Shown one piece after another: positions 6,257-64,000 of a stretch of 64,000 nucleotides of DNA (position 1 is its first letter; each line of letters opens with the position of its first letter). The stretch comes from Trichosphaerium sp. ATCC 40318 (taxonomy: Eukaryota > Protista > Tubulinea): contig JALMLS010000420.1 in assembly GCA_038496445.1 (NCBI GenBank), forward strand, positions 186,001-250,000, written 5' to 3'. Made by a program: the position numbers and the translations under genes. Below the pieces are notes generated by a model, which saw only the letters and a program-made list of their open reading frames with translations, searched no databases and was not told the origin of the DNA.

Positions 6257-6719
6257 GCTACCCTTAGTTCAGGCGTTAAATGTCTAAGATCCTTCTTCAT
6301 AGAGGTGATGGCGTTTCACCTCTTTTGTTAGGTAACTGCAGCAAACTGCCACATCAGACGTAACATCTACGTGAAGCTACCTTTAATTCGGGCGTTAGAT
6401 GCCGTAAGTCGCTCTTCAAAGCGGTGAAATGGCGTTTCACCTCTTTAGACAAATAACTGCAGCAAACTGCCACAGCTAACGTAACATCTACGTGAAGCTA
6501 CCCTTAATTCGGGTGTTAGATGCCGTAAGTCGCTCTTCAAAGCGGTGAAATGGCGTTTCACCTCTTTAGATAAATAGCTGCAGCAAACTGCCACAGCTAA
6601 CGTAACATCTACGTGAAGCTACCTTTAATTCGGGCGTTAGATGCCGTAAGTCGCTCTTCAAAGCGGTGAAATGGCGTTTCACCTCTTTAGATAAATAGCT
6701 GCAGCAAACTGCCACAGCT
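6257..6719. repeat. Tandem repeat, 121-bp unit, about 3.8 copies, with an internal hairpin
   Basis: TAACATCTACGTGAAGCTACC recurs at 6361, 6482 and 6603. Each unit carries the inverted repeat AAAGCGGTGAAA-TGGCG-TTTCACCTCTTT. The first copy is more diverged. Confidence 0.95.
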
Positions 6720-33326: not shown

Positions 33327-33569
33327 ACTCAGTTTAGTAACTACTAGTTTGATGAAACAAGAAATTGCAAGGAAACACGTATTAGGTTTGAGCCCTTTAT
33401 AACAACTAAATTTGTTTGGTCGTGGCTTCGTCATACTCTTCTGTAATATCAGAGTTTCTTCAATACTGTTAAATGGAACGTTGTAGAAGGGAACACAGGC
33501 GAGACAACGTACATTAAAGTATTACAGTATATTTTTTATAGTGGCTTTCTGTAATATGTGACACATTGA
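33327..33569. repeat. About 240-bp direct repeat, copy 1 (degenerate coding-like)
   Basis: ACTCAGTTTAGTAACTA...GTGACACATTGA recurs at 34474-34702 with indels. Confidence 0.85.
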
Positions 33570-34473: not shown

Positions 34474-34702
34474 ACTCAGTTTAGTAACTACCAGTTTGAT
34501 GAAACTAGAAATTGCAAGGAAACACGCATTAGGTTTGAGCTTTACAACAACTCAATTTGTTTGGTAGTCTCGTCATACGCTTTGTAATATCAGAGTTTCT
34601 TCAATACTGTTAAATGGGACGCTGTAGAAGGGAACACAGGCGCAACAACGTACATTACAGTAAGCTCTATGCAGTGGCTTTCTGTAGTGTGTGACACATT
34701 GA
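34474..34702. repeat. About 240-bp direct repeat, copy 2
   Basis: Homologous to 33327-33569. Confidence 0.85.
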
Positions 34703-41180: not shown

Positions 41181-41277
41181 GGGTATTTAATGACAATAAC
41201 ATAATAATAAACCAGGTAACCTTGTTACAGCGAAGTGAAAGGGGTTTTTTTTAATGAAATTAGTTGAAATACACATA

Positions 41278-43302
41278 TCAATTTCTGAGCGTCATTTCAA
41301 CTTTTACACCTTCCTTTGGTATAACAGTGAATGATTCACTCTGTGGTATAGGCCATGTTCTATTATCTGGCCATCCAAACTTAAATTTTTGAATAAGACG
41401 AGAAGTAGCTAATAAAATCTCTGCTTCAGCAAATGACTTTCCAACACAAATCCTAAGTCCAGCTCCAAATGGAGAATACCTGTATTTGAGAAAAAAAAAA
41501 ATTAGAAAAAAACAAGAATTGTTTCTATCTGTGTACTGCCGTTCAAAAATGAAATTTTTAAGTTTCTTACCCATGTAGTGGTATATTCTTTGCGTTTTCT
41601 TGTGAGAAACGAGATGGTTTATATTTATATGGTTCAGGGTATACTTTAGGGTTAAAATGAGACATAAAGAGAGACATCATAACTACTGACTAAATGGGTG
41701 TTAAGTCAGCTTTTAAACGTTTTTAAAGGATCTCGTACCCCTTTGGGAATATTATGTGATCCTACTTGTACATCCTTAACAAGTTGACGACGTACACTTG
41801 CACCTGAAGGGTACATTCGCATTGCTTCTTTAACACATTGACGTAAGTACTTAAAGTTTTTTACATCAGAGTATTTTGGCTGAGACTCTACGCCACCCAT
41901 GTGCTTTACAACTTCATCAAAAACTTTTTGTTGATCTTCAGGGTGTTTAGCTAGACACCCTATGGTATAAGACAATGCATTCGATGTTGTCTCTGCGCCA
42001 GCTAAGCTGTAGTTTTTGTAAGAAAAAACCTAAGCAAAAAACTGATAGCAAGAAACGTACACAAATGTGAAACATTCATCAAGCACTTCCTTTGGAGTTA
42101 GGTATCTTCCTTCCTTCTTTATTGATATCAAAATATCCAGTAAGTCACTCTTCTTACGATCAATATCTTCCTAAAAACAACAAGTTGAGCTAAAATGTGT
42201 GTTGTTCTTTTTTTGTTTGAAGCAAGTTCTTTGAAAAAAAAACCCAATCACTTTCCAATCAGAGCGTCTCACATACCCTGCTTTCTCTTGCCTCCATTTT
42301 CTTGTTAATTATATCAAAGCATACTCTTTCAACGAGTTTTCTTGCTTTGACAATCTTTCTTTGAGGCGCAAACGGAATAAACTCCAAATACTTTGATAAT
42401 TCTAAAGGTTCCTGAACACGGAAGATTGTTTCCTTCATGAGCACTTCTATAGCTTCCTGAACCTTTGATCTATTTCCAAATATAGCTAACACAATCAGTA
42501 CAACCATTAAAACATCAAACGGGGTCCAATAAACTCGCTAACAGCGCGAAATATAGAAAAACTGTCAAAGTTGAAAAAAACCAAAAAAAGCTGTTTACCA
42601 TTAAACTCGAAGCTGAATGCAGCTTTGCCAATGACATCCAGCGTAAGGTTTCTATACTCCTCGTACATATCCACAAGCGTTCTTGGTTTTGATACTTTGG
42701 ATTCTAGTTTTTTCGCCAACTGGTCTACACATTCTACCATAGACCACGTAATACGCTCTAACGACTTACTGTGAAACACAGGGGATATTAAACGGCGGTG
42801 TTGATTCCATTTTACGCCTTCTTGCATAAAAAGCCCTTCGACCCCAAAAGTAGTCGCTACTACGCGACTAAATCCTATCGTAATGCGTTAGACATTGTTT
42901 TACGAATTTTTTGTGTTTACTGTAACCGCGAACGTTTGTCGAGCGTAGAACCTTTGTCATCCATTCGAGGTTATTTATAAAGTATATAGAGCGTCCAGGG
43001 AAGGAAACGTTAATCTACAAAAACAATTGTTTGATTGAATGACATTTACGTCATGAGCGTACAATGTCGCCGCATTGATCATGCCATCTCCTCACGCAGC
43101 GGTGCAGTGATCCTTCTTGTTTTATTTGCAGTGCATGACCGAAAAACCAATGAAAAGGCTCCGGTCGGGGTACAGTAGCTACTGGCTTAGGTATGCGTAA
43201 CTAATATATAAAATTGAGCGCTGTATACGTTGTAATCCTACATACCTGCCAATATAGTAATAAAACGATGGTAACGGCGCCTAGTAGCAGTTCTACGAGC
43301 AT
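41278..43302 (-). CDS. Cytochrome P450, convergent with its neighbour
   Basis: N-terminal TM, WNQHRRLISPVF, AGAETTS, EAMRMYP, YKPSRF and YSPFGAGLRICVG. Confidence 0.93.
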
Positions 43303-43429: not shown

Positions 43430-44248
43430 ATGAGTCGTCAGCCTTGTGCAAAGAGAGAACCTTTAAAGATAGCAAGACTCACAACAAAAGACGTTGACGC
43501 AACGACCAAGGCGTTTGTAGATGTCTGGATGGATTCTAACACGATTGTAAAGGTAAAATAATCTTTTTTTTTTAACTCTTTGTTTTGCTTGCTACTAACG
43601 CTACGGGGAACCTCAGGCGTTGAAGATACCACGAAGGGAGTTGATACCGTATTTAAGCCTTGTCGTGAAACAAGCTTCTTTATATCCTTCAGTACGCTTA
43701 AACACAATAATAAATATCCTCACGCGTCGTAATAGGTTATTGCAAAGGTTGGAGAACGTATTGTGGGGTTTTTCCTTTGCTTTGATTTTCAGGATAAAGA
43801 TATTTTTGAATCGAGGTACATGTCAAGAAAAGTACAAATATGGAAGTCTTTCATAGGTGCTTGTGAAGACGAATCTACAAATGTTTTATATGATATGGGT
43901 ATACCTCTAAGTAGAGGTAATATTATATATGGCGTTGCAGGTGGCATGGATAGTGAGTATAGATCATCAAGACATTTTTATAAACTAGTTAGCGCTTTTG
44001 TTTCTAGCGTTCATGGAGCTGGTTATAATTATGCTTACGCTATTCAAACACATCCTTCGACTGTCACAAGTCCTGTAGCTGGACCTGGTATACATTATAA
44101 ATCGTGGAATTCCTTTAAACTACCTGATGGTAGCAAACCGCTGGCACATGTTAGAAGACCTTCTACAGCAAAAGTTACATTGGCCACTTTTTCAGACAAC
44201 TTTTTACAATCTCAGTATCCAAAGGAGAGGTTAAGGGCAAGACTGTGA
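43430..44248 (+). CDS. GNAT-fold acetyltransferase-like protein with a C-terminal PTS1-like ARL
   Basis: IARLTTKDVD, VIAKVGERIVGFFL and motif-A-like GMDSEYRSSRHFYKLV..GYNYAY. Ends RLRARL*. Confidence 0.55.
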
Positions 44249-45745
44249 CTGAGCTAAACGTATAGTTCATAAAAATAAAAGATTATTGTACAAATAAGTT
44301 GCGAATCTGTCCTTTTGAGGAGACGTACAAAAACCTAACAAATTAAGAATACAATAGCTCGTTTTGAATATAAAGAAGTGTTTATTTACTGGAGGGTAAT
44401 GAAATCATTCCCTTATTATTGAGAATGTTTCACCCTCATTCTCTTTTTTTTGATTGAGCTAGGTTTGTACCTCATATCTCGTACATTCCCAAGTGGAATG
44501 CGGTACACACAAAGGCAACTATGGTAAACACAGTGTTGGTGAAAGCGTCGCTTTGTGAGGGAAACAAAAGTGATGGTGCTAGTTCAGTTTCTGTTGGCAG
44601 ACCAGTTGGTGAGCTGGTTGGAACAAAAGCACAAACACCATCAATAAGAATTGATTCTGTATCACATAAACAATCTGGACCACAAAAGTCTGAACCATCA
44701 CATTCCTCAGTTAAGTCATCGTGGATATTGTTACCACAATCTACAGAGTGCTAATGTTAGTATTTCTTCCGGTTTTATTGGCTCTCTAAATACGTACCGT
44801 TGGTAACATTCAATGGTAGGGAGACATTTATAATATATGGAGGTGTTGTTGAGTCAATAAAAAAGTCGATGAGAAACTCTAAGGTAACAGTGTGTTCACC
44901 GTTTAATGGACCAACTAAATCTAATTTTAGGTGCATTTCAAATTGGTTTGATTCATTGGCTTGTTGTAATATCTCGATAGTATTGTTACTGGTCATGTTG
45001 ATGCGCAAATTGCTTGGACTAAACAAAACTGTTAACAAGTCTAAAAACAACTTTTAAAAGCGTCACGTGCCTTGGGGTTTCAAAGGTAACTGTAGCATAT
45101 ACGCTTTGTTTTAAATCAAACAGAGTTTGTTCAGATGCGAATTCATTCGTTCGGTATGTTGTTGACAAAACCGAGGTGATGATAGACGGTTCAACTTGAG
45201 AAAAAAAAAAGTCAGAAAAAAAAACCAAAAAAAAAAATTCCCTCAAAAACACAAAGAAAACTACGTACTTGGACTACCGTTTATAATATATACCTTGGCT
45301 TCATCAGGGGCACCTATTAATATGTCATCAAACCTATCTCCATGCACATCTACGCATTTTAAAGTTGGGTTTGTTATATTTCCGTTGATGAATACTGTAT
45401 CATCATCTGTGAAATTTGATAAAAAGCTATGACGATCAAGAAGTCTGCTGACATTTTGTAATACTATAGTATTGCCGCTATCTTTATCAGTCAAAATCAA
45501 ATCCATTACTCCATCTCCGTTGAAGTCACATACTTCGATGAACTGACTAGAATTAGTAATATCATTTGTTATTATTCCTCCATCTCCGTCTTCAATCAAA
45601 GTAGTAAGATTGTACGGCTCTTCAATCTCAAGGTATCCTGTTTTACCCCGAAACAGATAGATCGTGCCTAAAACATGTGCGATTAATAGTTAGAATCGCT
45701 TATTCTTTGTACCTTGAGCTGTGCCAATAGCAAACTCTGCCAAGC
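44214..45745. repeat. Left arm of a near-identical inverted duplication (pairs with 57903-59434)
   Basis: Reverse-complement match including introns and 3' flank; for example ORFs 44521..44754(+) and 58898..59131(-) encode identical peptides. Confidence 0.95.
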
Positions 45746-47012
45746 TATCTCCAGTTATATCTGTTAACCCATTAATGGAACTCCCAAATTCATCTCCCTC
45801 ATTTGTGCCACATAAAATAAAACCCACTTGACCTGCTTTTGCTATGAAACCAGCTGACTCGCTCTCCGCTTCTTGGTAAGAAATTAATATCCATACACAT
45901 CCTGTATTATTTTCTGCAGCCACATGGCTCATGGCAAGCGAAGAGCCAGGATTAGGATTTCCTTCTTCCTGAAACCCGCTTATAGAACCTACAAAAGGAT
46001 TATTGTAAACTATACTGACTGGGCTTACCAATAAATGTTAGAACTTGTCCGAAATCGCCAGGCAATGCTCCAATGTGTACCGAGCCAGGAAATAGTTCAT
46101 CAGGAACGTTGTATACTGCGCCAGGAACAACATACGCTGTACTTCCACGGAAAAAGATAACTACAGTGCTATTGTCTGTATCGCCCTTTATCGAAGCGGC
46201 AACGTCGCCAATGCCATCTCCGTCGCCATCACCACCGGCCACTGACAACACATTCTGCGGATAAGTGAAATCTGGTTCAACTGCAAAATCTTGAACTCTT
46301 TTCCCATTGTTCAATCTTGTCGCACTACTTATACCTATATGTACCTTTTTTTATTATTATGGATCATTGTTGTAAACGCAACGTACTTGTCGCGCACCAA
46401 ACAGTCCCAGGATGAGATCATCAACACCATCTCCAGTAATATCGGACGTTGCAATCAGCTGCAAGTTCTGGTAAGAAATCACTTCAGTACAGTTCGCCTT
46501 ACCTTGCCTAGCATTTCACCTATCCCTCCCAAAGCAAGCGCCAATTCTTCTATGACATTTGCTCTTCCGTTTTGGAGTAGATCAAGCACATTGACACTAG
46601 TTGTCCCTAGGTTGGTAAGTATCAAACTGCAGCATAGTATCATACCAAACCGAAAAACATCTACTCCTGTCTGAATTGTGTGTATTCGCCCAAGTTCAAC
46701 TTCTTGTGAAGTAAACTTTGGAGCTCCAATGGTAAGCTGAACTGTTCCAGTTAAGCTCGTAAAAAGTGCACTACTTGCGTACACTCGCTGTTGTTGCGCA
46801 ACACCTCTATGGAGCTTCCGAATTGGAAATCACTAGCACCAGCAGTAAGAGTGGTAACTTTGTAACCATCTACGTGAGCTATGTCTATAGTTCGTCCTGT
46901 TGAGATGATTGAGCTTATGCACGCGTAATTTAGCTAACTTTAATGTGTACCCACTGTGTACGACCAATAAAGGCAAATAATGAAAACTCTGTTTGCGTCT
47001 AGGCCTAACCAT
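44472..47012 (-). CDS. FG-GAP/integrin-alpha-like surface protein, long form, gene A
   Basis: IGAPKF, DITGDGVDDLILG, GDGDGDGIGDV, DFNGDGVMDLIL and DVHGDRFDDILIGAP. CGNNIHDDLTEECDG Cys module and a hydrophobic GPI-like C-terminus. The 5' end is uncertain. Confidence 0.8.
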
Positions 47013-47336
47013 CGTAAATACTGGAGTTAGGCGCTATTTATGTACTTTTGTACATTCCAAAGAGAGTAAGTAACGAAAAAAAAAGGAGCAAACATGGTTT
47101 GCTATCCGATAGTCAAACACTTTCAAGAGGAAAACAAGATCACCCTAGCTGAGCTATGTAGGGAGGGTTTTGCTGCTTACGTATAAGTTGCGTAATCGCT
47201 CACTAAACCACGTGGTCATACTTTGTAAGCACAGGCAGAAATACTTGATTGATTCATTCCGTATAAGTTGGATGTTTTAAGTCTTTTATCATTCTAACGT
47301 AATTCAAACAACTCAGCACCTCAGCTCTTTCAAAAA

Positions 47337-49747
47337 ATGTATTGTATTTCGAAAATATTGGTTTTGTGCGTTCTAGGTACGCGTGATAAACAGAAATCGC
47401 TCTGATTCTAGATTACACGATGAATAGAAATCACTCTGACTTTATGTAGTTTCTATTGTTGTAGGCATGCACTTGGAGCCAGTGTTAGTTGGTCGTATTC
47501 AAGGGCGCCCTGAAGAAGGATTTGGGAACCCTTTCTATGCAGATAACGTGTTCGGTGCGCAACTTGTTAGATTGAAATACTACTTTTTCTCACTCGATGA
47601 AGGCGCCATACTTTCAGGAGCGCCACAAAGAGATACCATTAGTGGTATCCAGGGCTTTGGAGCGTTTCAACAGTTTCAGAAGAGTGCCATGAAAGGCACC
47701 CAATCATTGGATGAGGTGCCACACACTACCACCCAGCATGTTCCAACACTGCAACGGAGAGATGCTGGTTTTGGAACAAACGTAAGAACTCGCACTGGTT
47801 AATTTTGCTAACTTTTCAATCAAGCTATCTCGCGCAATTTTGGGAGGAATGGTGAGAATTTTTGCCAAATTGCCTGGTAAACCTGTAAGTATTATTGTGT
47901 TGTCTGAATCTAACAACCATGTAGATTTATGTGTATCTCGATAATTCAACAGATCAACCTGCACAATTATACATAGATGGAGAGTTGTGCTTCGAGTTTG
48001 TGCTTGGACAGAACAGACCAAATGGAACTGTTGGGATTATGATGCAATGTGATAACCTTTACGCATTTGATGCGAATTTGGAAATGCTAGATGTAAACAC
48101 TTCTACATCAATACTAGACACCCCAAATATCAACACCCAAATATTTCTTGATGGTTTAGAAATCTTGGGCTACTACCGTGCGTTTGTTTTTTGTTTTATA
48201 CAAATACCTATTCACAAATTGTTAACCAAGTACCATTCTAGATACGACTAATAACTCATATCCAACTTTAAAACAATATCTTAATGACCAATCTACCCGT
48301 GTAGTTGTCATAACAGACGAATCAAATCCAGTTGTGCGTGATGAAAACATTCAACCAGTTGGAACATCGGGATTAAGTTTCAATGTGGACATGTATATTA
48401 CATCAAGCACACAAGTCGGACACACTGAGACAAGCTTTTTTCTTGTATTCACTGACAATAATCGTGAGTTGGGATTGCTTAAATCGTAGATAGTCGTCTT
48501 ACTGTTATTTTAGAGACAATAAAGGTGATGGAAGTACCAACCAATTATTTAAATGCTCCTGTTGAATTATTTGAGATATACAATGACATGTGTCCTCAAG
48601 GAGAACAAGTCCACGTGACTTCAGGGAAATTAGACGGAGACACTTACAATGACCTTGTGTTCGCTTGTAATAGTGAAATTTTGCGTTTAAGTGGAAGTGA
48701 ACTAGCTGGCGTAGAGCAAGGAGCGAAATTGATCCTGTCTGAACTCAACATTGTGAAGCAAGCAGTAGACAATAATATTACTGGTATACAATCAGCTGAT
48801 GTTGATAACGATGGTATAGATGAAGTGATAGTAGGCAGTCTTAATGCAGACATGTCAGCTTACAACATGGGTACGAGCAACAAATTGCAATGATGTTTCT
48901 AACCTTAAACTTGTAGGAACGCTCGGGGAACCAGTTTATACCATAGAAGTAGTTGACTCTAACGATGAGGTAATGAGTACCAATGTGTTTGATAGACGTC
49001 AAAAAAGATTTTTGCGTGCAACATTCGACGATATGAGGTAAACGTTTTTGTTGGCACATTGTTTAAGAATTGTTCCTCACATAATTGTTACAGAAATGGA
49101 AACGTCAACGTCATTGATGTCACTGTGAATGGTGTCACTGTAGATTTCACTGTAACTACTCAGATAATCGAAGGGTCAGTAGTAGTGAGGGTAGACTATG
49201 TTCGCGATACAACTGATAGTGTCGAAAATGTTGTCATTGTGTTGACTCGCTCCGAACACCCGTTCATTTCAAAGCAATTTAACATTGGCAGCATTATAAG
49301 TATAACTTCTGGTGCGTATTGTAAACTGTTCTTAACAAACTGTGTATCAAACTAACTCATTAAACAGACTGTGGGAATGGTAACTTTGATTCGGTCACTG
49401 AAGAGTGTGAAGGTACACCTGGGTGTTCTTATGATTGTCTGTGTGAAACTGCTTACTTGGGCAATGGAACTTGTGTACCTCCTCCAACAACTTCACCAAC
49501 AACAAATGCACCAACGACAGAGTCTCCTGCAATGAGGTCAACGACTGAGGCTCCTTTTTTCATTACTGAAGCACCTGAGACTTCTGTGATGCCAACTGCA
49601 TCTGTTCCAGTTGCTTTGTCTCCATCAAACCCGGTAACAGTTCCGTCAAAGTCCATAACAAGTGGCTCTTCAAAGAATGCCTTCACAAATGTGATTAGTG
49701 TTATTATCGCAATTTGTGTTGTATTTGCCACCGCCCTGTCCTATTAA
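47337..49747 (+). CDS. FG-GAP-like GPI-type surface protein, short form, gene C
   Basis: Signal MYCISKILVLCVL/VSIVVG, SGAPQR, GKLDGDTYNDLVFAC, DVDNDGIDEVIVG and DCGNGNFDSVTEEC. P/T-rich stalk and hydrophobic C-terminus. Confidence 0.8.
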
Positions 49748-50471
49748 TAAAAACCAATTTTGCATAGTTACTTTAGTACCTAGTGACACCAATAGAGTAC
49801 CACGGATATGATTTTTCTTAACTAAACAAGACGGTCACTTACCATGGATGGAGTGACTTGGAAGATATAAATCCTCACTAGCGTGTTGCGTTTGACCCAC
49901 ATATACGTTACTCTTCCTCCAAACCTGCCTTTTTGCTTACTCTGTCCCTTGTTGGTTCTAACTTAGGTTGTCTTTTAATTTTTGTTCTTTGTTTTTACAC
50001 TGTTGCTCTTCATTTTACAAAATTGAGTTTGGTGTTTCTAACAAAAAGTACCAACCCCTCCGTTTATTACTCTATGAAACGTTAAAGGGCACACGAAAGA
50101 TGAGAATATGTGGAAGAGAGACGCGGCCTTAGTTACGCTATTGTGACATACGTAATACATTCAGAATACATTTGTGTATTTCGTCAAAGTTCACAATGAA
50201 TATCTTAGTGGAAATACTTGGAAAAAATGCATACTGAACATGGTGACGTTACACGTTACACTCTACAAGAAGCATACGTCTGAAAAAGGTTTGGGATTTT
50301 GCTAGAACTTATTACAAAATTGGAAATGTAAATTTATGCAATAAAACTTGGGCATGTGATTTTTTCAACAACTATTATTTTGGCATAACTTCCGCAATGA
50401 AAGACGAGTGTTAGAAACGTTTTGTGGTGCTTTCAGATCACATGTTACCATTGACATATCAAAAACAATAT

Positions 50472-52832
50472 TTATGCGACAGTACAGTGTACTACTAGTA
50501 TCCACAAAACTAAGAAGAATGATACAATATGCGTTGGTGAGTTGCTTGTAATTGTTGATATTGTAATTGGTGGGGTTGTATTTGGTGATGTTGTGGTTGA
50601 ACCAAATGTAGTTGATACTACTATTGATGTTGGTGATGTTGTTGTTGTTTGAGAAGTAGTGGGTGCATTTGTAGTCGATTGAGAAGTAGTGGGTGCATCT
50701 GTTGTCGGTATCATTGTTGGAGGTACACAAAATCCATTACCCAAGTATGATGTGAAACACAGACATTCATTGTCACATCCAATTGTACCATCACACTCTT
50801 CAGTGTTTGAGTCGAATACACCATTTCCACAATCTGTTTAGACAATGTCAATATTTACAAGAGTTCCAATGTTCTTGTTTTACAAAGTACTTACTTGATG
50901 AAATGTTGATTGTATGACTCACGTTAAATGAAACATCAACAAAAGGGTATTCAGTCATACTCAACATGATATTTACATTTTCTTCACTATCAGTGGTATT
51001 ACGTTTGTAGTCCATTACCAATACTATTGATCCATTGATGCGCTCAGAAGTTTTTTTATACGCAATTGTATTATCATTCACAGTGACTTTTGCTATGTCG
51101 ATGTTTTGGCTTCTGAGGTTGAAACATGAGCAGCTCAAAACAAAAAAAAGAAAAATCAAGCTTGTACTACAAGACGGAAAACCCTTCTTTGGAGAGTATC
51201 GAACATATTGGAATCATTTGCAGTTGACAATGTAAGCACCTCAAGTTGATACGCTGGCGTTTTGAGGATTCCTAAAAGTTGTGTTAAAACAAAATAAAAA
51301 AGAGCTGTAGTTTTTAGTACCTGTTTTATAAGCAATGACCGATGGAACTCCAGAAATACCAATTTCATCAATACCGTCTTTGTTAAAGTCACAACTTTGA
51401 AACCCAGTCATGTTGACAGGAGCTTGTGCCACCTGTGCTGTGATTTCTGACATATTCAATTGTGTTCTGTTTTCGAAACTGATAGAGCGACCAGGAATCC
51501 AAAAGAATGTTCTGTCGTTGAGGCAACCGAATGCACTATCTGTTATATTATCTCGGTCATATTTCCCTGACTTCATAACCAAAGCTCTTTCAGGACAGAT
51601 GTCGTTGTACAACTTAATCGATTGACTTTGGGCATTTGACCCATTGATTGATATTGTTTGTGGTGTAACATATTCTAAAGCAACGTGTTAATACTTAATT
51701 GTAAACCCCCAAGACTATACGTTTGTCGTTTTGGATATAGAGGAGAAAAGAATCCTCATTTTGGACCATTTGGTAAGCTGCCATGACACGGTAGTCTAAT
51801 ACAACTCTGATACCAAAAGTTGATTCTGGTTCAAAGTCATCAGCATGTACAATCTGTTTCAGTTTGTTTAAAACGAAATACAGAACTGTAGATTGGTTGT
51901 TGTGCTTGTAATAGGCCGGATACATCTCATTACTAGTAGCTATATTGATGCTTAGAAGAACATTGGTCACGTGTTTTAACTAAGACGTACTGAAATACCC
52001 CAAGATTTGTAAACCATCAATGATTAATTGTAATTTAACAGTGGTGTTGTCAAGTATCGACGTTGATGTTTCTGCAGCGTACATTTGGGGAGTGATAATA
52101 AACGAGTATAATTGGTCACATTGTGCCATTATCCCGATGTTTCCATTGAGCTTATTCAGCGCAATCTCAAAGTTATAAACTCTCTCTCCGTCCAAGATTA
52201 GTTGTGCTGGTTGAGCGCTTGAACCATGAGTGTATATGTAAATCTACATAACAGTAAAGATACAGTACATCTATTTCAGTAGGTACCTTTCCTCGACCTG
52301 GTATAATAGTAAAAGTGTATTGTACTCCTTGAAACACTACGCTTGCAAGCTTGATAGAAAAGTTAGCAGTAGAGGGAGCCATGATTTCGTACATTTGTTC
52401 CTAAATACGAATTTGGAAGTGCAGGTGAGGGAAGATGTTGTGTGGTTGTATGAGGAACATCTTCTAGAGATGAAGTGCCAACTAAACTAAGTGAGCGGAG
52501 AATATTCCGTAGTGATTGAAGTTAGTTACCAGGTACATTTTTTACAAAACTGTTAAACGACCCAAAGTTCAAAACTGAGCCCTTTCTTTGCCGTGGAGCT
52601 GACACGTCAAAATTATCTACAGCTTAAGTAAGCAAAAACCGAGTACGATCATAAAAAGAAACATGGCGTACCTAGATCGTTAGACGCAACAAATGACTCT
52701 CCAAAGCTGGCATCAACTATTCCTGTTATGGTGAAGAGCTCAGAAGGCTCCGCAAGCTTACTAAGTGAAGTTGAAACTATAAACTGTAAGATTTGATTAT
52801 CACGGACTATACGTCGACATCCCCAAAAACAT
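50472..52832 (-). CDS. FG-GAP-like surface protein, short form, gene D
   Basis: Same exon layout as C. GKYDRDNITDSAFGC, DFNKDGIDEIGI and DCGNGVFDSNTEEC. T/P stalk and hydrophobic tail. The first exon is uncertain. Confidence 0.78.
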
Positions 52833-52983
52833 TTCTGTTTTGTTGCAAAAAAGCCGAAAATGGTGTGAGTTTTCTGTAAACGACAAATTGGTGAAAGTGG
52901 CTGCAAGTGTACTAGGTCTCTTTGTAAAGACACCCACACCGACAGGAAACTAAGCCCATTTTAGGGTTTGTTTGACTTTCGTT
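52826..52983. repeat. About 150-bp conserved 5' block between divergent genes D and E, duplicated at 62420-62578
   Basis: TTTCTGTTTTGTTGCAAAAAAGCCGAAAATGGTGTGAG...GGTTTGTTTGACT occurs twice in direct orientation. Confidence 0.9.
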
Positions 52984-55293
52984 CATAAAAGAAGAAATAA
53001 CTAACTTATTGTGCAGTTTCTGTTGCTTTCAGCGACCTATCAGATCCCGTACTGTATGCACGTATTCAAGGGGACACTTCAGGCGGTTTTGGAAGCCCAT
53101 TTTTGGCCAGCAACGACTTTGGTATGTCATGTTTTTATTGTGAACATTTGCTGACTTAAATCAGATTACATTACAATCTCGTCACCGTTGTTAGACAAGC
53201 AAGGAATAGAAAACTTCGGAGGTATTTACAAAATACCCACAAGTTTTCAAGGTAAACAACTATTTATAAATCTACGTAATTTATTATTAGGTGAACAATT
53301 AATTGAAGACATACAACACGACCTCATTCAAGACATTCCAGCCGAGTCACTCAATAATGCTGTTCTTGGAACTAATGTACTTTATCGAGAGTGTTTTACC
53401 ACTAACCTCAATCAAGATTGGCCTTTCTATTGTTGGAGGAGTGGAGCACACTATGACCACAATAGCAAATGGAAACAAGGTGCATCTTACTTTTTTGTCA
53501 TATCATTTACTAATCCTTGTGTAGATTTTTGTGTATTCTAATTCAACAGCTCAACCAGCAACTCTGATCATGGGCGAGTTTTGTAACAAGTTCATGACCG
53601 CTCAGTATGCACATGATGGAAATGTTGGGGTTGTCGCAGAATGCATAAACGCAGTTATTTCGTTTGTTGTGACTCCAGCTATGCATGTTCAAGGGGTATC
53701 AACAGATTTAAACTCCAATTCTTTTGCTCGTTTTCAACATATCGTTGGTGGTTTGCAACTGTTGGGGTACTACTGTACGGTACAAAATGTACACCGCCTG
53801 ATACTAAATGCATTGTAGATACAACCAATGAAATATATCCCATGTTTTTCACACGTGACAATCAATCTACCTTCATATTTATCGCTACCGACAAAACAAA
53901 GCAAGTAGTACGGATCACCGACTTTCAAGGACCTCATGGGTTCACAATAGAATTGAACTTTAATGTTACATCAGCTACACAAGTTGGACACAACGAGAGC
54001 ACTATTGTTCTTATGGTTTCTGACAATAATCGTAAGTTTTTAGTTTGTTTGTAATATTATGGTCTTCTTAAACACTTTTTTAGAGACATTAAGGCTGATG
54101 TCAATAGCAATTAATGATTCTAATGCAACTGAATTGTTTGAGATACACAATGATGTGTGTACACAAGGACAGGTCTTTATGACATCAGGGAACTTGGACA
54201 GAGATGATATTATTGATTATGGCTTCGGTTGTCCTGGCAATAATCTATTTGGTTGGATAAGTGGAACACAGCTTGACAGCATTGAACAAGGTTCAAAATT
54301 AATCATGTCCGAGATCAGTAATCATGTGACGCTTGGACTCACAACAATCACTGGTGTACAATGTCAGGATTCAAACAGTGACGGTGTTGATGAACTTGTT
54401 GTTGGATCAGTTCCATATATTTCATGGTACAACATGGGTACAATGCAATACTGTTTGAATACAATCACTAACTTTGCGTTTTAGCAACACTCAAACAACC
54501 AATGTATCAAATTGATTCATTCAAATCAAACAATTTGACATCTGTCACAGCTGATTTTGATACACGTCAAACAAGAATCTTGGTTGTCACAATTGATACT
54601 TTAGAGTATGTCTAAAGTGGTTACCTGACCTACCCTATCTGACTGTGTTCACTTATTTGCAAACTAGGGATCAAGATATTCAACTCAATGACATCACAGT
54701 AAATGGTGATAACGTCACATATACCAATACATCTCAACAGACCAATGGATCAATGTTATTGACAGTGGAGTACAAACGTAATACCACTGATAGTGAAGAA
54801 AATGTAAATATCATGTTGAGTATGACTGAATACCCTTTCGTTGATGTTTCATTTAACGTGAGTCATACAATCAACATTTCATCAAGTGCGTACTTTGTAA
54901 AACAAGAACATTGGAACTCTCGTAAATACTGACATTATCTAAACAGATTGTGGAAATGGTGTATTCGACTCAAACACTGAAGAGTGTGACAATACAATTG
55001 GATGTGGCGATGAATGTCTGTGTTTCACATCACACTTGGGTAATGGATCTTGTGTACCTCCTCCAACAATGATACCGACAACAGATGCACCCACTACTTC
55101 TCACCCAACAACAGATGTACCAACTACTTCTCAACCGACAACAACATCACCAACATCAATAGTATCAACCACAGCGTCACCAAGTACAACCCCACCAATT
55201 ACAATATCAAGGATTACAAGCAACTCGCCAAGGTGGCTTACATCGCATTTATCACTATTGACGCTTGTCATTTATTATTGTGTATTTATGTAA
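52860..55293 (+). CDS. FG-GAP-like surface protein, short form, gene E
   Basis: GFGSPFLASNDFG, GNLDRDDIIDYGFGC, DSNSDGVDELVVG and DCGNGVFDSNTEEC, then stalk and hydrophobic tail. The start is uncertain; a clear exon begins at 53017. Confidence 0.78.
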
Positions 55294-55389
55294 AGACATC
55301 CAAGTAAATAAATGCCCATCAAACGTTTCATAAAACGGTGTACTTGTGAGTCTCAAAAATAAGTAAAACAGTATGTGCGCGGTAAACTG

Positions 55390-56399
55390 GCTTTACGAAA
55401 ACTTTTTTGCATTTGTCGACTTTTTTGTCTTCACTGGTACGTGGCCATTGGTGACAATACAAGTAGTCACCAGGAATTGCATTATGTGCATTTAAACAAT
55501 TAGAAGAAGGAACTTTCAAATTCTCTACTTTTTTTCCCCACGTGTTGAAACTGCTCATTGTATAAGTGTGAAATGAAAACGTAAACTCAGGGTTTTTAAT
55601 TAGTGATGTTATATAAGGAAGTCTGGCTTACAACTACTCCAAAGATCATTAACCAACCCATTCCTCAGTTGTTGCCCAAAGACAGTACAAGTGTATTTAA
55701 TGTACTGGTAAGTGGCTAAAATGAAGCTAGAATAGCTACATTGCACTCTTCTCTCCATGTCTACTACATTACCAGCAGAAAACAAACATGCGCCTTGATT
55801 GTTCTCGCTTGGGAGGTGAACCTGCACTTTCACTCATTTGTAAGAAAATACTGTGATTTTCGATTAAAAAACGAGTTCGACTTGAACCTATTATTTTTAT
55901 TGCAAAGACCGTTTAAAAGGCCGTTTTGGAAACATCTCTACGTTTTTTTTAAGTCGTTTTTTCATTCAAATCTCATCACAGTTGGCAGTTTATCATGATT
56001 AGCTATTTCACTCTATTTTGCTTCCTCACTTTACGTGTGTTTCTGGTAATTTATGTACCACATCAATCTCTAAAGTTATTGGAATTGACGCGGATCAGCA
56101 CCAAAAAATTTATCGATAATTCCAATTTTGAGTTCGTCATTAATACTCATAAGCAAAACCTTTTTCATCCCTCATACTTGTTACGATGGGTACTTTAGAC
56201 ATGTTTTGGTTTGTTAACAAGAAGTACATGCCCTCAGTGACAAACAATACCGAGCTGAAAATTGGGATTGGGTCAATTCTAGTGTCAGGTTTTCGCCAAG
56301 CTTGCGGAACGCATACAATATGCCAGTGTTTGAGGATTGGCATAAGACGGGTTTGGGAGCCAAGTACTCGTAGGCAATGGCGGCACCACGGCTTTTCAT
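55390..56399 (-). other. Possible hypothetical gene or gene remnant
   Basis: Short exon-like frames (MKSRGAAIAYEYL..., VQVHLPSENNQGAC...) with no recognisable motif. Confidence 0.25.
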
Positions 56400-56628
56400 G
56401 ATTGAATTTTATACAGTTCTATTCGTTCATCACTTATTGCCCAAAATATCACTCAAAAGTCGACTTGGTAGCGATTCTTTAATGTTTTTAAGGTAATATG
56501 GTCTCCACCCTCAAAAACAATAAAACTATTATGACTGGAGGATGTTTGACTTGCAAATAATTTCGGCCAGGTTTTTCGACACTTACTTGCTTTGGAATGT
56601 ACTCAAGTAGAAGAATACTACTTAATTA

Positions 56629-59180
56629 ATGACAAATTTACGTGAGCGTAGGGGTTTTTGTGTACGCACACTTTTTTGTTATTTGCCTTTGTTGGTCGTG
56701 TACAACCGGTACGTACTGGTTAATCTACGCATGTACTAAGCTCAACAAGGATTAACGGTAGATATTCGGGACGTTGATGGCTACAAAGTTACAACTCTCA
56801 TTGCAGGGCCAAAAGACCATCAATTTGGAACCACTATTGAGGTTTTGCGCAACAACAGTGACGGTAACATGTTTTTGTTATTTTTTCAAAAACTAAGCGC
56901 TAATAGTACACGTTGTTGTGGGAGCGTCAAATTTTGAACCTGACTTCGGGTTCGGGCGTATACACTACGTAAAGACAGGATCTGATGTTTTTTGTTTTGG
57001 CACGAAACTTTTGTACTTTCAATACGCTTACCTTCTGGTAGGCAAACCTAGTGTCAATGTGCTTGATCTCACCGATGGCAATGCAATAATCGTTGAGTCG
57101 CTATCAAGTCGGGATACTCTTTTAAATGATATGTTAGGAAAGGTACAGTAAGGCTGTTCGCTATTTAATAAACAAGTACTAGCTAGTTGCAACATCTGAT
57201 ATGACAGGAGATGGTATTGATGACCTTATAATTGGCATACTTGGCCCAGTGCGTTGCGTTTACTAACATCCTTCCGTAACACAAAAAGGTATACGTTACT
57301 ATAAGCAATGCACCTAGATTGGATAATGGAAGGCAGGCACAAAATTTCGTTATTGACGCTATTACAACTGGTTTGGGAGCGTTGAATATGCTTTCGGTAG
57401 CCGGTGGTGACGGTGACGGCGATGGTATTGGCGATGTTGCATTCTCATTAACTGCCGCGACAAACGGTAACAATTCTGTTGTCTTTTTGCGCGGAAGTAC
57501 AGAGTATGTTGTGCCAGGTGCAACGTACAGAGTTCCTGATAATACAACACCTGGATTTCGTACATCTGTACACCTCAAATACATGCCGGAGAATTTTGGC
57601 GAAGTTCTATCATTTATTGGTAAACAAGCGCATTTTTAGTTTAGTAATCTCTAATAGGTTCGATCAGCGGTTTTAAAGAAGAGGGGAAGCCCAATCCAGG
57701 GTCTTCGCTTGCAATGAGTGACTTAGCTGCGGAAAGTAGTACGGGCTGTGTGTGGATATTAATTTCCTACGAAGAATCATTTGTTAATGCAGCTGCTTTG
57801 GCAACAGGCCAAAGCCAAATTGGTTTTATTTTGTGTGGCGAAAATGAGGGAGATGAATTCGGTAGTTCAATTAATGGGTTAACAGATATAACTGGCGATA
57901 ACTTGGCAGAGTTTGCTATTGGCACAGCTCAAGGTACAAAGAATAAGCGATTCTAACTATTAATCGCACATGTTGTAGGCACGATCTATCTGTTTCGGGG
58001 TAAAACAGGATACCTTGAGGTTGAAGAGCCGTACAATCTTACTACTTTGATCGAAGACGGAGATGGAGGAATAATAACAAATGATATTACTAATTCTAGT
58101 CAGTTCATCGAAGTATGTGACTTCAACGGAGATGGAGTAATGGATTTGATTTTGACTGATAAAGATAGTGGTAATACTATAGTATTACAAAATGTCAGCA
58201 GACTTCTTGATCGTCATAGCTTTTTATCAAATTTCACAAATGATGATACAGTATTCATCAACGGAAATATAACAAACCCAACTTTAAAATGCGTAGATGT
58301 GCATGGAGATGGGTTTGATGACATATTAATAGGTGCTCCTGATGAAGCCAAGGTATATATTATAAACGGTAGTCCAAGTACGTAGTTTTCTTTGTGTTTT
58401 TGAATTGTTTTGGTTTTTTTTTTTTGGTTTTTTTTTTCTGACTTTTTTTTTCTCAAGTTGAACCGTCTATCATCACCTCGGTTTTGTCAACAACATACCG
58501 AACGAATGAATTCGCATCTGAACAAACTCTGTTTGATTTAAAACAAAGCGTATATGCTACAGTTACCTTTGAAACCCCAAGGCACGTGACGCTTTTAAAA
58601 GTTGTTTTTAGACTTGTTAACAGTTTTGTTTAGTCCAAGCAATTTACGCATCAACATGACCAGTAACAATACTATCGAGATATTACAACAAGCCAATGAA
58701 TCAAACCAATTTGAAATGCGCCTAAAATTAGATTTAGTTGGTCCATTAAACGGTGAACACACTGTTACCTTAGAGTTTCTCATTGACTTTTTTATTGACT
58801 CAACAACACCTCCATATATTATAAATGTCTCCTTACCATTGAATGTTACCAACGGTACGTATTTAGAGAGCCAATAAAACCGGAAGAAATACTAACATTA
58901 GCACTCTGTAGATTGTGGTAACAATATCCACGATGACTTAACTGAGGAATGTGATGGTTCAGACTTTTGTGGTCCAGATTGTTTATGTGATACAGAATCA
59001 ATTCTTATTGATGGAGTTTGTGCTTTTGTTCCAACCAGCTCACCAACTGGTCTGCCAACAGAAACTGAACTAGCACCATCACTTTTGTTTCCCTCACAAA
59101 GCGACGCTTTCACCAACACTGTGTTTACCATAGTAGCCTTTGTGTGTACCGTATTCCACTTGGGAATGTACGAGATATGA
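56629..59180 (+). CDS. FG-GAP/integrin-alpha-like surface protein, long form, gene F (paralog of A)
   Basis: VAGGDGDGDGIGDVA, DITGDNLAEFAIG and DVHGDGFDDILIGAP. The 3' half is nearly identical to A and the 5' half is diverged. The start is uncertain. Confidence 0.8.
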
Positions 59181-59434
59181 GGTACAAACCTAGCTCAATC
59201 AAAAAAAAGAGAATGAGGATGAAACATCCTCAATAATGAGGGAATGATTTCATTACCCTCCAGTAAATAAACACTTCTTTATATTCAAAACAACACAGAT
59301 TCGAAATTTGTTAGGTTTTTGTACGTCTCCTCAAAAGGACAGATTCGCAACTTATTTGTACAATAATCTTTTATTTTTATGAACTATACGTTTAGCTCAG
59401 TCACAGTCTTGCCCTTAGCCTCTCCTTGGATACT
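57903..59434. repeat. Right arm of the inverted duplication (pairs with 44214-45745)
   Basis: Extends through the 3' flank and the last about 10 codons of the GNAT gene. Confidence 0.95.
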
Positions 59435-59464
59435 TGCTTCAAACAAAAAAAGATCAACACGCGT

Positions 59465-59920
59465 TTTAGCTCAACTTGTTGTTTTTAGGAAGATATTGAT
59501 CGTAAGAAGAGTGACTTACTGGATATTTTGATATCAATAAAGAAGGAAGGAAGATACCTAACTCCAAAGGAAGTGCTTGATGAATGTTTCACATTGTACT
59601 TTTTTGCTATCAGTTGCCTACTTACAAAAACTACAGCTTAGGCGACGGTGGGACAACTTCAAACGTATTGTCTTATACCAAGGGGTATGAGATCCTAAAC
59701 GTTTAAAAGCGGACTTAACACCCATTTAGTCAGTAGTTATGATGTCTCTCTTTATGTCTCATTTTAACCCTAAAGTATACCCTGAACCATATAAATATAA
59801 ACCATCTCGTTTCTCACAAGAAAACGCAAAGAATATACCACTACATGGGTAAGAAACTTAAAAATTTCATTTTTCAACCAGTACATGTGATTGAAACAAT
59901 TCTTGTTTTTTTCTAATTGC
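59465..59920 (+). pseudogene. Truncated, internally deleted copy of the P450 at 41278-43302
   Basis: Matches the reverse complement of about 42194-41500 (EDIDRKKSDLLDIL..., VVMMSLFMSHFNPKVYPEP). It lacks the ExxR exon and both termini. Confidence 0.9.
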
Positions 59921-60109
59921 TCATCGGTACTTGTGAGTCTCTTAAATAAATAAAACAGTATAATGTGCAAGTGGTAAGCTGTCCCGTTTAGGTCTATATT
60001 ACAAATGAAAAAACATAGTATAGGATGTACTATGATCACAGCATAGTTGCTCTAGTTTATTTATACAACACGGGTTTCTACAATGTTGGAAACTACCTTA
60101 CTAGCATGT

Positions 60110-62376
60110 TTATACTATGATGCAGTAAATCAAAAGCATCAGTAATAAGACGAATACTGTACATTTTGACGATGTGCTTGTTATTGCTGATATTGTAATT
60201 GGTGGAGTTGTACTTGGTGAAGCTGTAGTTGATACTACTATTGATGTTGGTGATGTTGTTGTTGTTTGAGAAGTAGTGGGTGCATTTGTTGTTGGTTGAG
60301 AAGTAGTTGGTGTTTCTGTTGTCGGTATCATTGTTGGAGGAGGTACACAAGATCCATTACCCAAGTATGATGTGAAACACAGACATTCATCACCACATCC
60401 AATTGTATTATCACACTCTTCAGTGTTTGAGTCGAATACACCATTTCCACAATCTGTTTAGACAATGTCAGTATTTACGAGCGTTTCAATGTTCTTGTTT
60501 TACAAAGTACATACTTGATGAAATGTTCAGTGTTTGATTGGCAACAACCAAAACTGAAACGAATGGGTACTGACTAAATTCCATAAAAATGTCTACATTC
60601 TCTTCGCTTTCGTTGGTGTTCCGTGTGTACTCCACTGTTAGCACTATAGATCCATTCTGTCTTCGAGACGTGTTGCTATACGTTACTGGATTGTTATTAA
60701 CAGTCACATTAGCAATATCAACGTTTTGTTTGCTGTTAATATAAAAGTGAGTATCCTGGTGTAGCATATAAAAAAAAAAATTGCCGTACGATTTCGCCTC
60801 TACCACAACGCTCAATACTCTTCTTTGAAGAGTATCAAACACATCAAAAGAAGATTCAGGATTCCAGGTGAGTACATCCACGTGATATATCGGAGTTTTT
60901 AGGATACCTGAGGTACAATGGATTAGTGTAAGATAGAAAGTATTGTGTTGTACTTGTTTCATAGGTTAGGATACTTGAACCAGCACCAAGTAAAATCTCA
61001 TCGAGGTTGTTCTCATTAAGATCACAGCTTTGAATACTTGTGATATTTCCAGGAGCATGTGACACTTGCTTTGCGATTTCAGACATATTCATCTGGAAAC
61101 CGGAATCCGCGATATCACGCCCGCTTAGCCATCCATATTTGGTGTGATTGATACAAGCAAAAGCATAGTCGAGTGTACCATCTTTATCATAGTGACCTGA
61201 TATAATACCCACGTGGTATGGACAAAAGTCATTATTTATACTAAATGATCCTTGTTGGGAGTTCGACCCATTGATTGATACGGCCAGGTGCATAACATTT
61301 CCTAAATCAGGCGTTAGATGAGCTAACGTAGACGAAAACAGTACCCTCGCTGTCAATAACCATTAAAAATATTGTGTCGTTATTGCGGTCAACTTGTACT
61401 GCTGATACCACAGTAGCGTTTATCACTATTATAAACTGAAAGTCGAGATCGCGTATAATACTCTTCGTCTTGTCTGGGAAGAAGTGCAGGGTGGTAGATT
61501 GATTAAAATCCGAGAAACTAAAATATGCAGAATATATTTCATTGTTCGTTCCTACAACGCTTTTAGCAACTGTCGTTGCAGTAACTTAACTGTAGACATA
61601 CTGAAGTAGCCCAATGGTTGTAAATCATCAATGATTTCTTGAAATCTAGCAGATGGGTTGTCTTTTATGAACGTAGATACTCCTCCAGCATGCATTTCTG
61701 GAGTTACAACAAATGCAAAAACTTTGTCTAAGCATTCTACAACAACCCCAACGTTTCTATCAGGAGCAGACTGAGCAATCATAAACTCTCCACAGAACTC
61801 GTTAGCCAAGATTAATCTGGCAGCTTCAGCTGGTGAAGAAGCAGGAAACACATTGATCTACACGTGAATGTTAAATAGGATAAAGATAAAAAGTAGGAGG
61901 TACCTCATTTCGCTCTGGTATGCTTGTATAAATGTACTCAACCCCTCCGATATTAGAACGCCCAAGCTTGACAACTGTTAGTGACAAAACAGGGTACACA
62001 ATTTAGTACATAAGTTCCAAAACCAGCGTCTGTATATGGTATTATTGGAGTGTTTTGGATCACCAAACCAGGAATGTCTTCCAGTAATTGACTGCCTAAC
62101 AAACGCATTACGAAAAGAACTATGCAAGCTTCTTATTACCTTGAATGGTTTTAAGGATACTTTTAACCCCTCCGAACCTGGTAGCACCTGGCTTGTCCAA
62201 TGACACCAACCCGAAATTTATAAGTTCTACACCAGAGCATAAGTTTCAGTCAATAAAAAAAAACCTTGTCGTACCGAATTCGTTGGTGGCCAAAAAGGTA
62301 CCAAGTCCATCCTCCAACCGACTTATAATGGTGGAGTGCAGTTTTGGGCTGGCAAGCTCGCTTGATGAGCACGAAA
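60110..62376 (-). CDS. FG-GAP-like surface protein, short form, gene G
   Basis: GLGTFLATNEFG, GHYDKDGTLDYAFAC, DLNENNLDEILLG and DCGNGVFDSNTEEC, then stalk and hydrophobic tail. The first exon and ATG were not resolved. Confidence 0.75.
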
Positions 62377-62419
62377 CTACAATACATCAGAGATTGATTT
62401 TGCTTATCGGAATCCACCT

Positions 62420-62578
62420 AAACGTTTCTGTTTTGTTGCAAAAAAGCCGAAAATGGTGTGAGTTTTCTGTAAACGACAAATGGGTGAAAGTGGCTGCAAG
62501 TGTACTAGGTTTCTTTGTACAGACACCCACAATGACAGGAAACTAAGCCCATTTTTGGGTTTGTTTGACTCTCGCTCA
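62420..62578. repeat. Second copy of the conserved 5' block, upstream of gene G
   Basis: About 90% identical by eye to 52826-52983. Confidence 0.9.
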
Positions 62579-63189
62579 CATCTCTGAAACGCATACAAAT
62601 AGTCACAATCGGCTATTCTACGCACGTAAAGGCCGTACAGAAGTGGAAATGTTTCGGTGGATGTCGACATAAAAGAAGTGTACCTGATAGAGCGTAAATA
62701 CAAATAAAACAAAGATAACAGTATATCTTCGCCATTGTAAGAGTTGCAATGTTTGTTGGATGAGGAGTAATAATGAACAAACTTAATCAAGAAAAACATG
62801 AAATGTTTTGTATTACGAGTTTTACGGAGTTAAGATTGCGTTTTTTAGTGTATATCTTAACATCTAAGTGTGTTTTAGTGTATTTTGAATAATTGTTCTG
62901 ACGTTTTTGCAGTATTTCGGTCTATTTCATCCTAATATTGGACAATCATTCATTATCTCTTGATTCCGTACCAATGATCTTACTTTCGGTAGCGTGTACA
63001 GAAATTGTAACCTCCAAAGTGAGTAAGTGATGAAAAACTTTCTCGTCTTTTTCTAAAAACTCCACAAACCTGTTAAACCAAAACATGCTCAGTTAACGCG
63101 CACATTTTACCGTTTTACTTATTTTTGAGACTCACAAGTACACCGTTTTATGAAACGTTTTTGACGAGCATTTATTTACTTGGATGTCT

Positions 63190-64000
63190 TTACATAAATA
63201 CACAATAATAAGAAATGACAAGCATCAATAGTGATAAAAGTGATACAGTCCACCTTGATGAGTTGCTTGTAATCGTCGATATTGTAATTGGCGGGGTTGT
63301 ATTTGGTGGCGCTGTGGTTGAAACTAATATTGTTGTTGGTGATGTTGTTGTTGGTTGAGAAGTAGTGGGTGCATTTGTAGTCGGTTGAGAAGTAGTGGGT
63401 GCATCTGTTGTCGGTATCATTGTTGGAGGAGGTACACAAGATCCATTACCCAAGTATGATGTGAAACACAGACATTCATTGCCACATCCAATTGTATTGT
63501 CACACTCTTCAGTGTTTGAGTCGAATACACCATTTCCACAATCTGTTTAGATAATGTCAGTATTTACGAGCGTTTCAATGTTCTTGTTTTACAAAGTACG
63601 CACTTGATGAAATATTGATTGTATGACTCACATTAAATGAAACATCAACAAAAGGGTATTCAGTCATGCTCAACATGATATTTACATTTTCTTCACTATC
63701 AGTGGTATTACGTTTGTACTCCACTGTCAATAACATTGATCCATTGGTTCTTTGAGATGTGTTGGTATATGTGACGTTATCACCATTTACTGTAATGTCA
63801 TTGAGTTGAATATCTTGATCCCTAGTTTGCAAATAAGTGAACACAGTCAGATAGGGTAGGTCAGGTAAACGCTTTAGACATACCCTGAAGTATCAATTGT
63901 GACAACCAAGATTCTTGTTTGACATGTATCAAAATCAGTTATGACAGATGTCAAATTGTTTGATTTGAATGAATCAATTTGATACATTGGTTGTTTGAGT
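63190..64000 (-). CDS. FG-GAP-like surface protein gene H, 3' part (near-identical to E, runs off the window)
   Basis: ORF 63575..63844 is almost identical to 54645..54932. The inverted homology covers 54489-55388 versus 63089-64000, including introns and 3' flank. Confidence 0.85.

Follow-up and report, generated by a model that had tools for sequence, protein, structure and literature searches.

The Tgr proteins of Dictyostelium are Ig/TIG-repeat transmembrane ligand-receptor pairs. In Pneumocystis, the msg-I genes are subtelomeric, have an identical 33-bp junction in all members and use one expression site, with switching demonstrated (10.1101/158881). That coats can be mutually exclusive in free-living protists too is illustrated by Paramecium (PMC4235209). 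The clustered protocadherins of fugu combine 5′ parts that are 60-80% alike with near-identical 3′ parts and a sharp boundary, a pattern attributed to regional gene conversion (PMC1852091). Among the amoebozoan integrin-alpha-like (ITGA) proteins, all except a single one lack GFFKR, and some have Ig-like, C-terminal EGF-like or Pro-rich parts; Trichosphaerium is not named in the main text of that study (10.1101/2020.04.29.069435). Here we analyse a cluster of genes for integrin-alpha-like surface proteins in a 64-kb stretch of the Trichosphaerium sp. ATCC 40318 genome (hereafter the window; contig JALMLS010000420.1, with all positions given as those of the window). Our verdict is that the cluster is a known kind of recombining surface-gene array, formed by an apparently undescribed family. 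It looks like the product of ordinary recombination in a gene array and not like a proven coat-switching system.

The original prediction had placed an array of at least seven related surface-protein genes at 44472-64000, and at least seven paralogs (A and C-H) are indeed located there, H being cut by the window edge (Table 1). No other family member was found elsewhere in the 64-kb window. The genes fall into a long (A, F) and a short (C, D, E, G, H) subfamily, which can be aligned with each other only across their last 80-290 residues, at 25-40% identity. For C, a 2024-nt spliced cDNA contig running from 47291 to 49766 confirms all nine introns by nine GT-AG joints, and reveals that the gene has its own start site and its own signal exon. 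The models of A, D, E, F, G and H were built by hand from homologous intron positions and phases; only that of C is RNA-based.

Pairwise comparison confirms that the near-identical blocks of the short-type genes are recombination tracts. D (51037-50534) and E (54743-55231) are 93% identical over ~490 bp, with identity dropping to 49% before and 43% after the block. Likewise, the G tract is 94% identical over ~340 bp, with ~57% before and 45% after it, and E and H are 93.6% identical over all 908 visible columns, flank included. Near-identity thus begins at staggered points, as had been noted from the sequence, at 51037/54743 for D/E in the best fit and at 60527 for G; every short-type tract overlaps the Cys module, and the left ends vary. 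Introns lie within the blocks, again as described beforehand: D, E and G share 92% identity in the last intron, compared with 55-65% against C and 43-69% for other introns. Differences within the tracts are mostly transitions (12:2, 15:1 and 8:0, transitions to transversions), as expected of real mutation since the event. Because introns are included and the differences are mostly transitions, we interpret the blocks as gene-conversion or partial-duplication tracts. Purifying selection as the source of the 3′ identity was ruled out, since introns and synonymous sites are homogenised too, as was collapse of identical repeats, since the copies differ by transitions. That the C-termini are homogenised proved true of the 3′ tracts and not of the extreme C-termini, because the D and G tracts stop before the hydrophobic tail. 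Furthermore, near-identity also occurs 5′ (a 172-bp block of D versus G) and outside the genes (3′ flanks and cytochrome P450 fragments). The 3′ near-identity and its sharp boundary recall the fugu protocadherins, whose fold, however, is unrelated; here there are no shared constant exons, strands alternate, and the tracts are older and cross introns and flanks.

The long-type pair displays the same kind of transition. Per 100 columns, A and F share 58-80% identity up to A 45744 / F 57902 and 97-100% beyond it, almost exactly where the switch had been predicted (about 45745/57903); the one exception within the tract is an 87% bin in a poly-T intron. The switch point is inside the propeller, and the tract covers more than half of the protein. 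The first 285 aligned codons show 58% protein identity, a synonymous divergence (dS) of 1.07 and a ratio of nonsynonymous to synonymous divergence (dN/dS) of 0.30 (0.21-0.41), and the last 353 codons show 98% protein identity and a dS of 0.043, a 25-fold drop in dS at the boundary. Differences within the A/F tract are mostly synonymous. The fall in dS and the transition-biased differences uphold the proposal of gene conversion or recombination with staggered, sharp breakpoints through introns. After the 3′ flank, the A/F match jumps twice into fragments of the neighbouring P450 gene. The A/F tract and these jumps would fit template-switching repair. The P450 genes form a tail-to-tail pair at 39100-43000 with no mutual DNA similarity, and the minus-strand gene is the source of the copies at 59432-59918.

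An older layer of exchange concerns C, D, E and G. In exons 2-6, the informative sites place C beside D and E beside G (CD|EG, 44:16:17); in exons 7-10, they pair C with E and D with G (CE|DG, 22:57:12). The topology switches at the end of exon 6 (0/2000 permutations), and on either side of this point the alternative trees are rejected by approximately unbiased (AU) tests (p 0.008-0.014 and p 0.0004-0.001), these p-values being somewhat optimistic because the breakpoint was picked from the same data. The two N-halves and two middle halves occur in every one of their four combinations. Read from the sequences, these patterns show that the four genes swapped N- and middle halves long ago, an event additional to those claimed earlier. 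Divergence within types is large (dS 0.8-1.6), indicating that the exchange is ancient. If a tail-to-tail pair was duplicated in tandem and the inner, head-to-head genes then underwent one inversion between them, the outcome would be exactly C(+), D(-), E(+), G(-) with the observed contents; two independent conversions would be an alternative route.

D and E are arranged head to head, their second exons 240 bp apart. A search for orphans homologous to the C or G signal exon found none for D or E in this 240-bp gap or in any intergenic gap; E retains 31 nt of its own intron 1. Signal peptides, which had been ascribed to all genes, are therefore present in A, C, F and G, and no exon 1 was found for D and E. 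As assembled, D is broken because the donor of its second-last intron is lost. The 172-bp block at the D/E junction has no unusual RNA fold (z -0.13) and no Rfam match, ruling out a structured RNA. In the gap between E and F, a short hydrophobic open frame (55995-56045) ends at a splice-donor-like site; its phase is wrong for the family's signal exon and it has no significant similarity to the C or G signal exons.

We consider it probable that the locus is a lineage-specific surface-glycoprotein cluster evolving by birth-and-death with undirected ectopic recombination. The analyses above show the layers of that recombination, namely an old half exchange, younger tracts of 340-1500 bp that are now 2-7% diverged, and damaged copies. 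In the proteins, a Ca-loop FG-GAP-type head would be displayed on an Ig-like domain, an EGF-like Cys module and a P/T-rich stalk, an architecture that is partly shown. Repair between opposed paralogs would start at their most alike part, the conserved Cys module, and would run on for variable lengths, producing nested tracts, staggered left ends and 3′ polarity. In the unconverted gene C, this module is the most conserved island (76% vs 52% and 38% alongside). The polarity can arise without selection for a constant anchor, because the Cys module is most conserved, the tracts overlap it and their left ends vary. The intact genes would probably each be under their own promoter, differing by cell or stage.

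Pairwise dN/dS of the heads is 0.29-0.61 with every interval below 1, a coarse test here, near saturation, suggesting that the heads are under purifying selection. The original prediction had envisaged a constant anchor that is kept while the exposed domain diversifies. That reading holds only partly: these ratios, and the position of the D and G tails outside the tracts, do not support such a design, nor does the A/F tract, which takes in part of the propeller, the flank and neighbouring P450 sequence. Expression was assessed from assembled cDNA contigs of three libraries (X1, X2 and X3; X1, the smallest, is template-switch cDNA of 2023), which demonstrate presence only, cannot prove that a gene is not expressed, and represent one sample. 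C was seen in X1 and not in the larger X2 and X3. No transcript contig of D was found in the three libraries, nor did any of their contigs match the D tract at 88% similarity, a level at which transcripts of E, G or H would be expected to match in part. These observations hint at cell- or stage-specific expression of cluster members. Several results weigh against an undirected origin of the cluster: pairwise dN/dS at dS near or above 1 is blind to selection on a few loop sites, C appears in one library of three only, and D and E both lack exon 1, D starting with the G intron-1 block and E having an otherwise intact frame, an arrangement that also fits a leader-swapping design.

Programmed variation nevertheless seems to us very unlikely. 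In a regulated scheme, the leaderless D and E would be a silent archive, activated when recombination at the shared intron-1 block links them to a promoter and signal exon (those of G), or when inversions between opposed paralogs swap tails, with one member expressed per cell. The missing signal exons of D and E agree with this, and so does the D 5′ block, which is 93% identical to G intron 1 and in direct orientation; a crossover at this block would join the G leader to D in the correct splice phase. That only C was seen, in the smallest of the three libraries, points the same way, and Pneumocystis msg-I operates so (10.1101/158881). However, identity of the block is 93% rather than 100%, and C, A, F and, in sense orientation, E do not contain it; the loss of a splice donor has broken D; C, G, A and F are each equipped with a leader of their own; the divergence of the tracts (2-7%) makes them evolutionary, not ongoing; and the 64-kb window contains no telomeric repeats. 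We accordingly hold such regulated variation to be highly improbable. The msg genes resemble the cluster in coding for surface glycoproteins of the glycosylphosphatidylinositol (GPI) type, in being mosaics from ectopic recombination, and in having leaderless members with a shared 5′ element (10.1101/158881), whereas here most members have their own leader and one leaderless copy carries the shared block. The identical junction element that marks a leaderless archive in VSG and msg systems was not found, the block being common only to D and G, at 93%. Trypanosome VSG and Paramecium surface antigens are, like this family, multigene coat families with variable exposed parts, but expression site, telomere linkage, large archive and exclusivity belong to those systems, and the VSG analogy would call for an expression site and for switching. 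A working coat-variation or self-recognition system on an integrin-like head, with leaderless bodies activated via a shared promoter-plus-signal-exon module, inversions reshuffling the head halves and one member per cell, likewise deserves little credence.

It is also unlikely that this is a self/non-self or prey-recognition locus like tgrB/tgrC, a structurally unstable hotspot with heads subject to diversifying or balancing selection among strains. Both are amoebozoan surface-protein loci, and duplication, inversion, recombination and gene loss are concentrated here in 20 kb, as in the tgrBC hotspot (PMC12745789); the proteins have divergent heads, and a dN/dS of up to 0.6 is high for old paralogs. 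Yet no dN/dS exceeds 1, no receptor-type member with a cytoplasmic tail occurs in the window, past whose edge the cluster runs, and the single transcript, that of C, differs from the assembly at 4 sites in ~2 kb. Strain polymorphism, which the Tgr analogy would require, is demonstrated for tgrB/tgrC, whereas the present data come from one isolate. We hold it also against expectation, and decidedly improbable, that the pattern is largely an assembly artefact, in which amplification chimeras or cross-polishing between paralogs made the shared blocks and junctions. The Trichosphaerium assembly derives from REPLI-g amplified DNA followed by three rounds of short-read polishing (PMC10521059), and because the DNA was amplified, single junctions may be artefacts; inversions with deletions make up more than 85% of amplification chimeras (PMC1855051), and the D/E junction and the P450 fragments have this geometry. 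Against this, the copies are 93-98% and not 100% identical, their differences are transition-biased and, for A/F, mostly synonymous, the tracts are in register within open frames, D and G revert to gene-specific tails, and the old half-swap could not originate so. For the D/E junction and the D lesion taken alone, an amplification artefact is plausible, if doubtful.

The shared layout of the proteins is a signal peptide, an FG-GAP-type head, an Ig-like domain, a Cys/EGF-like module, a P/T stalk and a terminal hydrophobic tail; in A, the head reads as an FG-GAP propeller and the stalk is short. Database searches were run with single exons or open frames, and joined spliced proteins were compared only among themselves. 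An FG-GAP-like region had been assigned to all genes. The F exon 57957-58382 supports it, matching FG-GAP and FG-GAP_3 above the Pfam cut-offs, the only tested exon to do so; C and G exons match FG-GAP below the cut-off, and D and E exons have no FG-GAP match in Pfam. A and F have 2 strict and up to 4 loose cation motifs and, read by eye, about seven blade-like motifs; C and D have 1 strict motif each, E and G 0, and C, D, E and G at most two clear blades by sequence. By these motif counts, A and F would qualify as ITGA-like, a class defined by at least 3 FG-GAP blades and a cation motif together with either a signal peptide or a membrane segment. Among solved structures, integrin alpha-4/alpha-V propellers come closest to the F exon, as weak sequence matches (best E 2.5e-4), and a PDB profile search with the FG-GAP exon of C, D, E and G gave no match. 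The second-last exon (72 aa) is predicted to be a beta-sandwich (pLDDT 83) whose structural matches are only of a generic Ig-like kind (best Z 5.9, rmsd 3.0, 67 aligned); Foldseek found nothing for it at E<=0.001. For G exons 9-10, single-sequence prediction gave a model of unusable quality (pLDDT 47). The Cys module has six cysteines and gave only a weak EGF_3 match, in C (E 0.004, below cut-off). A Myxococcus-type Cys repeat was considered for it and found no support, only the weak EGF_3 match coming up.

Metazoan integrin alphas share the FG-GAP Ca-loop motifs and the propellers that the F exon weakly matches, but have a thigh and two calf domains and a transmembrane helix with a KxGFFKR tail. 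Here, the span from head to Cys module is only ~110 aa, with no thigh, calf-1 or calf-2 legs and one Ig-like domain instead. The 19-residue hydrophobic end runs to the stop codon in all seven proteins, none of which has a GFF motif or cytoplasmic tail, and they are therefore not integrin alphas proper. The sequence features of GPI-anchored adhesins are all present (signal peptide, S/T/P stalk, tail-less terminal hydrophobic peptide), except that D and E lack the signal exon and the 5′ part of H is outside the window. Judged by these features, the proteins are most likely GPI-anchored adhesins or lectin-like receptors, acting as cell-surface glycoproteins. They resemble the loosely defined amoebozoan ITGA types I and II in having FG-GAP blades with cation motifs (10.1101/2020.04.29.069435), but differ in combining head, Ig-like and EGF-like domains and P/T stalk, in their hydrophobic end without cytoplasmic part, and in that their genes form a recombining cluster.

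HMMER searches with the F FG-GAP exon against 1.84 billion representatives returned generic FG-GAP repeat proteins only and no close relative. Exon 6 had no match in a 5.8-billion sequence set (short candidates only), no related locus turned up in metagenomes or viral contigs, nor an exact DNA pattern in metagenomes, Atlas feature searches yielded nothing of use, NCBIfam gave nothing relevant, and one search of the literature brought up no publication on proteins of this kind in Trichosphaerium. A family of tail-less integrin-alpha-like surface proteins appears to be undescribed so far. Such a family in Amoebozoa bears on the roles of FG-GAP heads before or outside integrin heterodimers. The 20-kb locus records three layers of recombination (the old half-swap, nested conversion tracts and complex repair), and offers a clean case of a protist surface array that gains its 3′ polarity with no dedicated machinery. 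Were expression found to be exclusive in the eight published single-cell libraries (PRJNA833396), the locus would turn into a coat-switching system of a free-living amoeba that is open to testing.

Table 1. Genes, tracts and related features of the cluster, in window positions.
Feature	Position	Strand	Basis or remark
Gene A, long type	44472..47055	-	Hand-built model, open frame; 5′ micro-exon inferred from agreement with F
Gene C, short type, 644 aa, 10 exons	47337..49747	+	cDNA-supported, expressed; outside all recent tracts
Gene D body	50472..52776	-	Hand model; no signal exon found; broken as assembled
Gene E body	53017..55293	+	Hand model; open from exon 2 through the stop; signal exon not found
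Gene F, long type, inverted paralog of A	56597..59180	+	Hand model, open frame
Gene G, 626 aa	60110..62735	-	Hand model, open frame; signal exon 62735-62684, intron 1 of 307 nt
Gene H, last three exons	63190..64000	-	Remainder beyond window edge
D tract, ~93% to E/H, mid Ig-like exon to stalk end, tail excluded	50534..51037	-	Best-fit tract
G tract, ~94% to E/H, spanning last intron, Cys module and stalk but not the tail	60188..60527	-	Best-fit tract
E side of E/H block, including ~90 bp of 3′ flank	54489..55385	+	Sequence comparison
Diverged copy of E/H 3′-flank sequence, facing the G 3′ end	59927..59990	+	Sequence comparison
D lesion: short deletion spanning splice donor, then in-frame stop	51113..51165	-	Comparison with G
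172-bp block 5′ of D, 93% to part of G intron 1, forming the D/E junction	52814..52985	-	Sequence comparison
G intron-1 block shared with the D/E junction	62407..62578	-	Sequence comparison
A side of A/F tract	44214..45744	-	Sequence comparison
F side of A/F tract, 96-98%, reaching ~250 bp beyond the stop codon	57902..59434	+	Sequence comparison
Two inverted P450 fragments (93%, 97.5%) joined to the F flank	59432..59918	+	Sources 41957-42227 and 41500-41743

Some details of gene structure were noted in addition. Intron 2 of C (47555-47602) is 48 nt long, in-frame and without a stop, and 47603-47781 directly follows it; one intron of D, E and G is not present in C. Putative GC donors were modelled for the A and F introns 45019-45070, 57000-57041 and 58582-58633. 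A 25-bp motif lies directly 5′ of the A and F start codons (47056-47080, 56571-56596), and occurs again between G and H (63013-63038, minus strand) with no gene behind it; it is possibly a promoter motif or a remnant of a long-type 5′ end.

The window as a whole has a GC content of ~37% and many introns of 40-70 nt, and the Trichosphaerium sp. ATCC 40318 draft, for which there are single-cell cDNA libraries, has a GC content of 37.69% and a mean intron of 75 bp (PMC10521059). Between C and D, 50073-50260 is probably a dispersed repeat, with a single copy in the window and 90-99% matches in several other contigs of all three cDNA runs. Outside the cluster, a minus-strand open frame of 668 aa with internal repeats (19383-21389) adjoins a myosin head exon (22390-22893) and is possibly a myosin tail. 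A tandem repeat at 6257-6719 has a 121-bp unit in 3.8 copies with 92% matches, and 33327-33569 and 34474-34702 form a direct duplication of ~240 bp with 86% identity.

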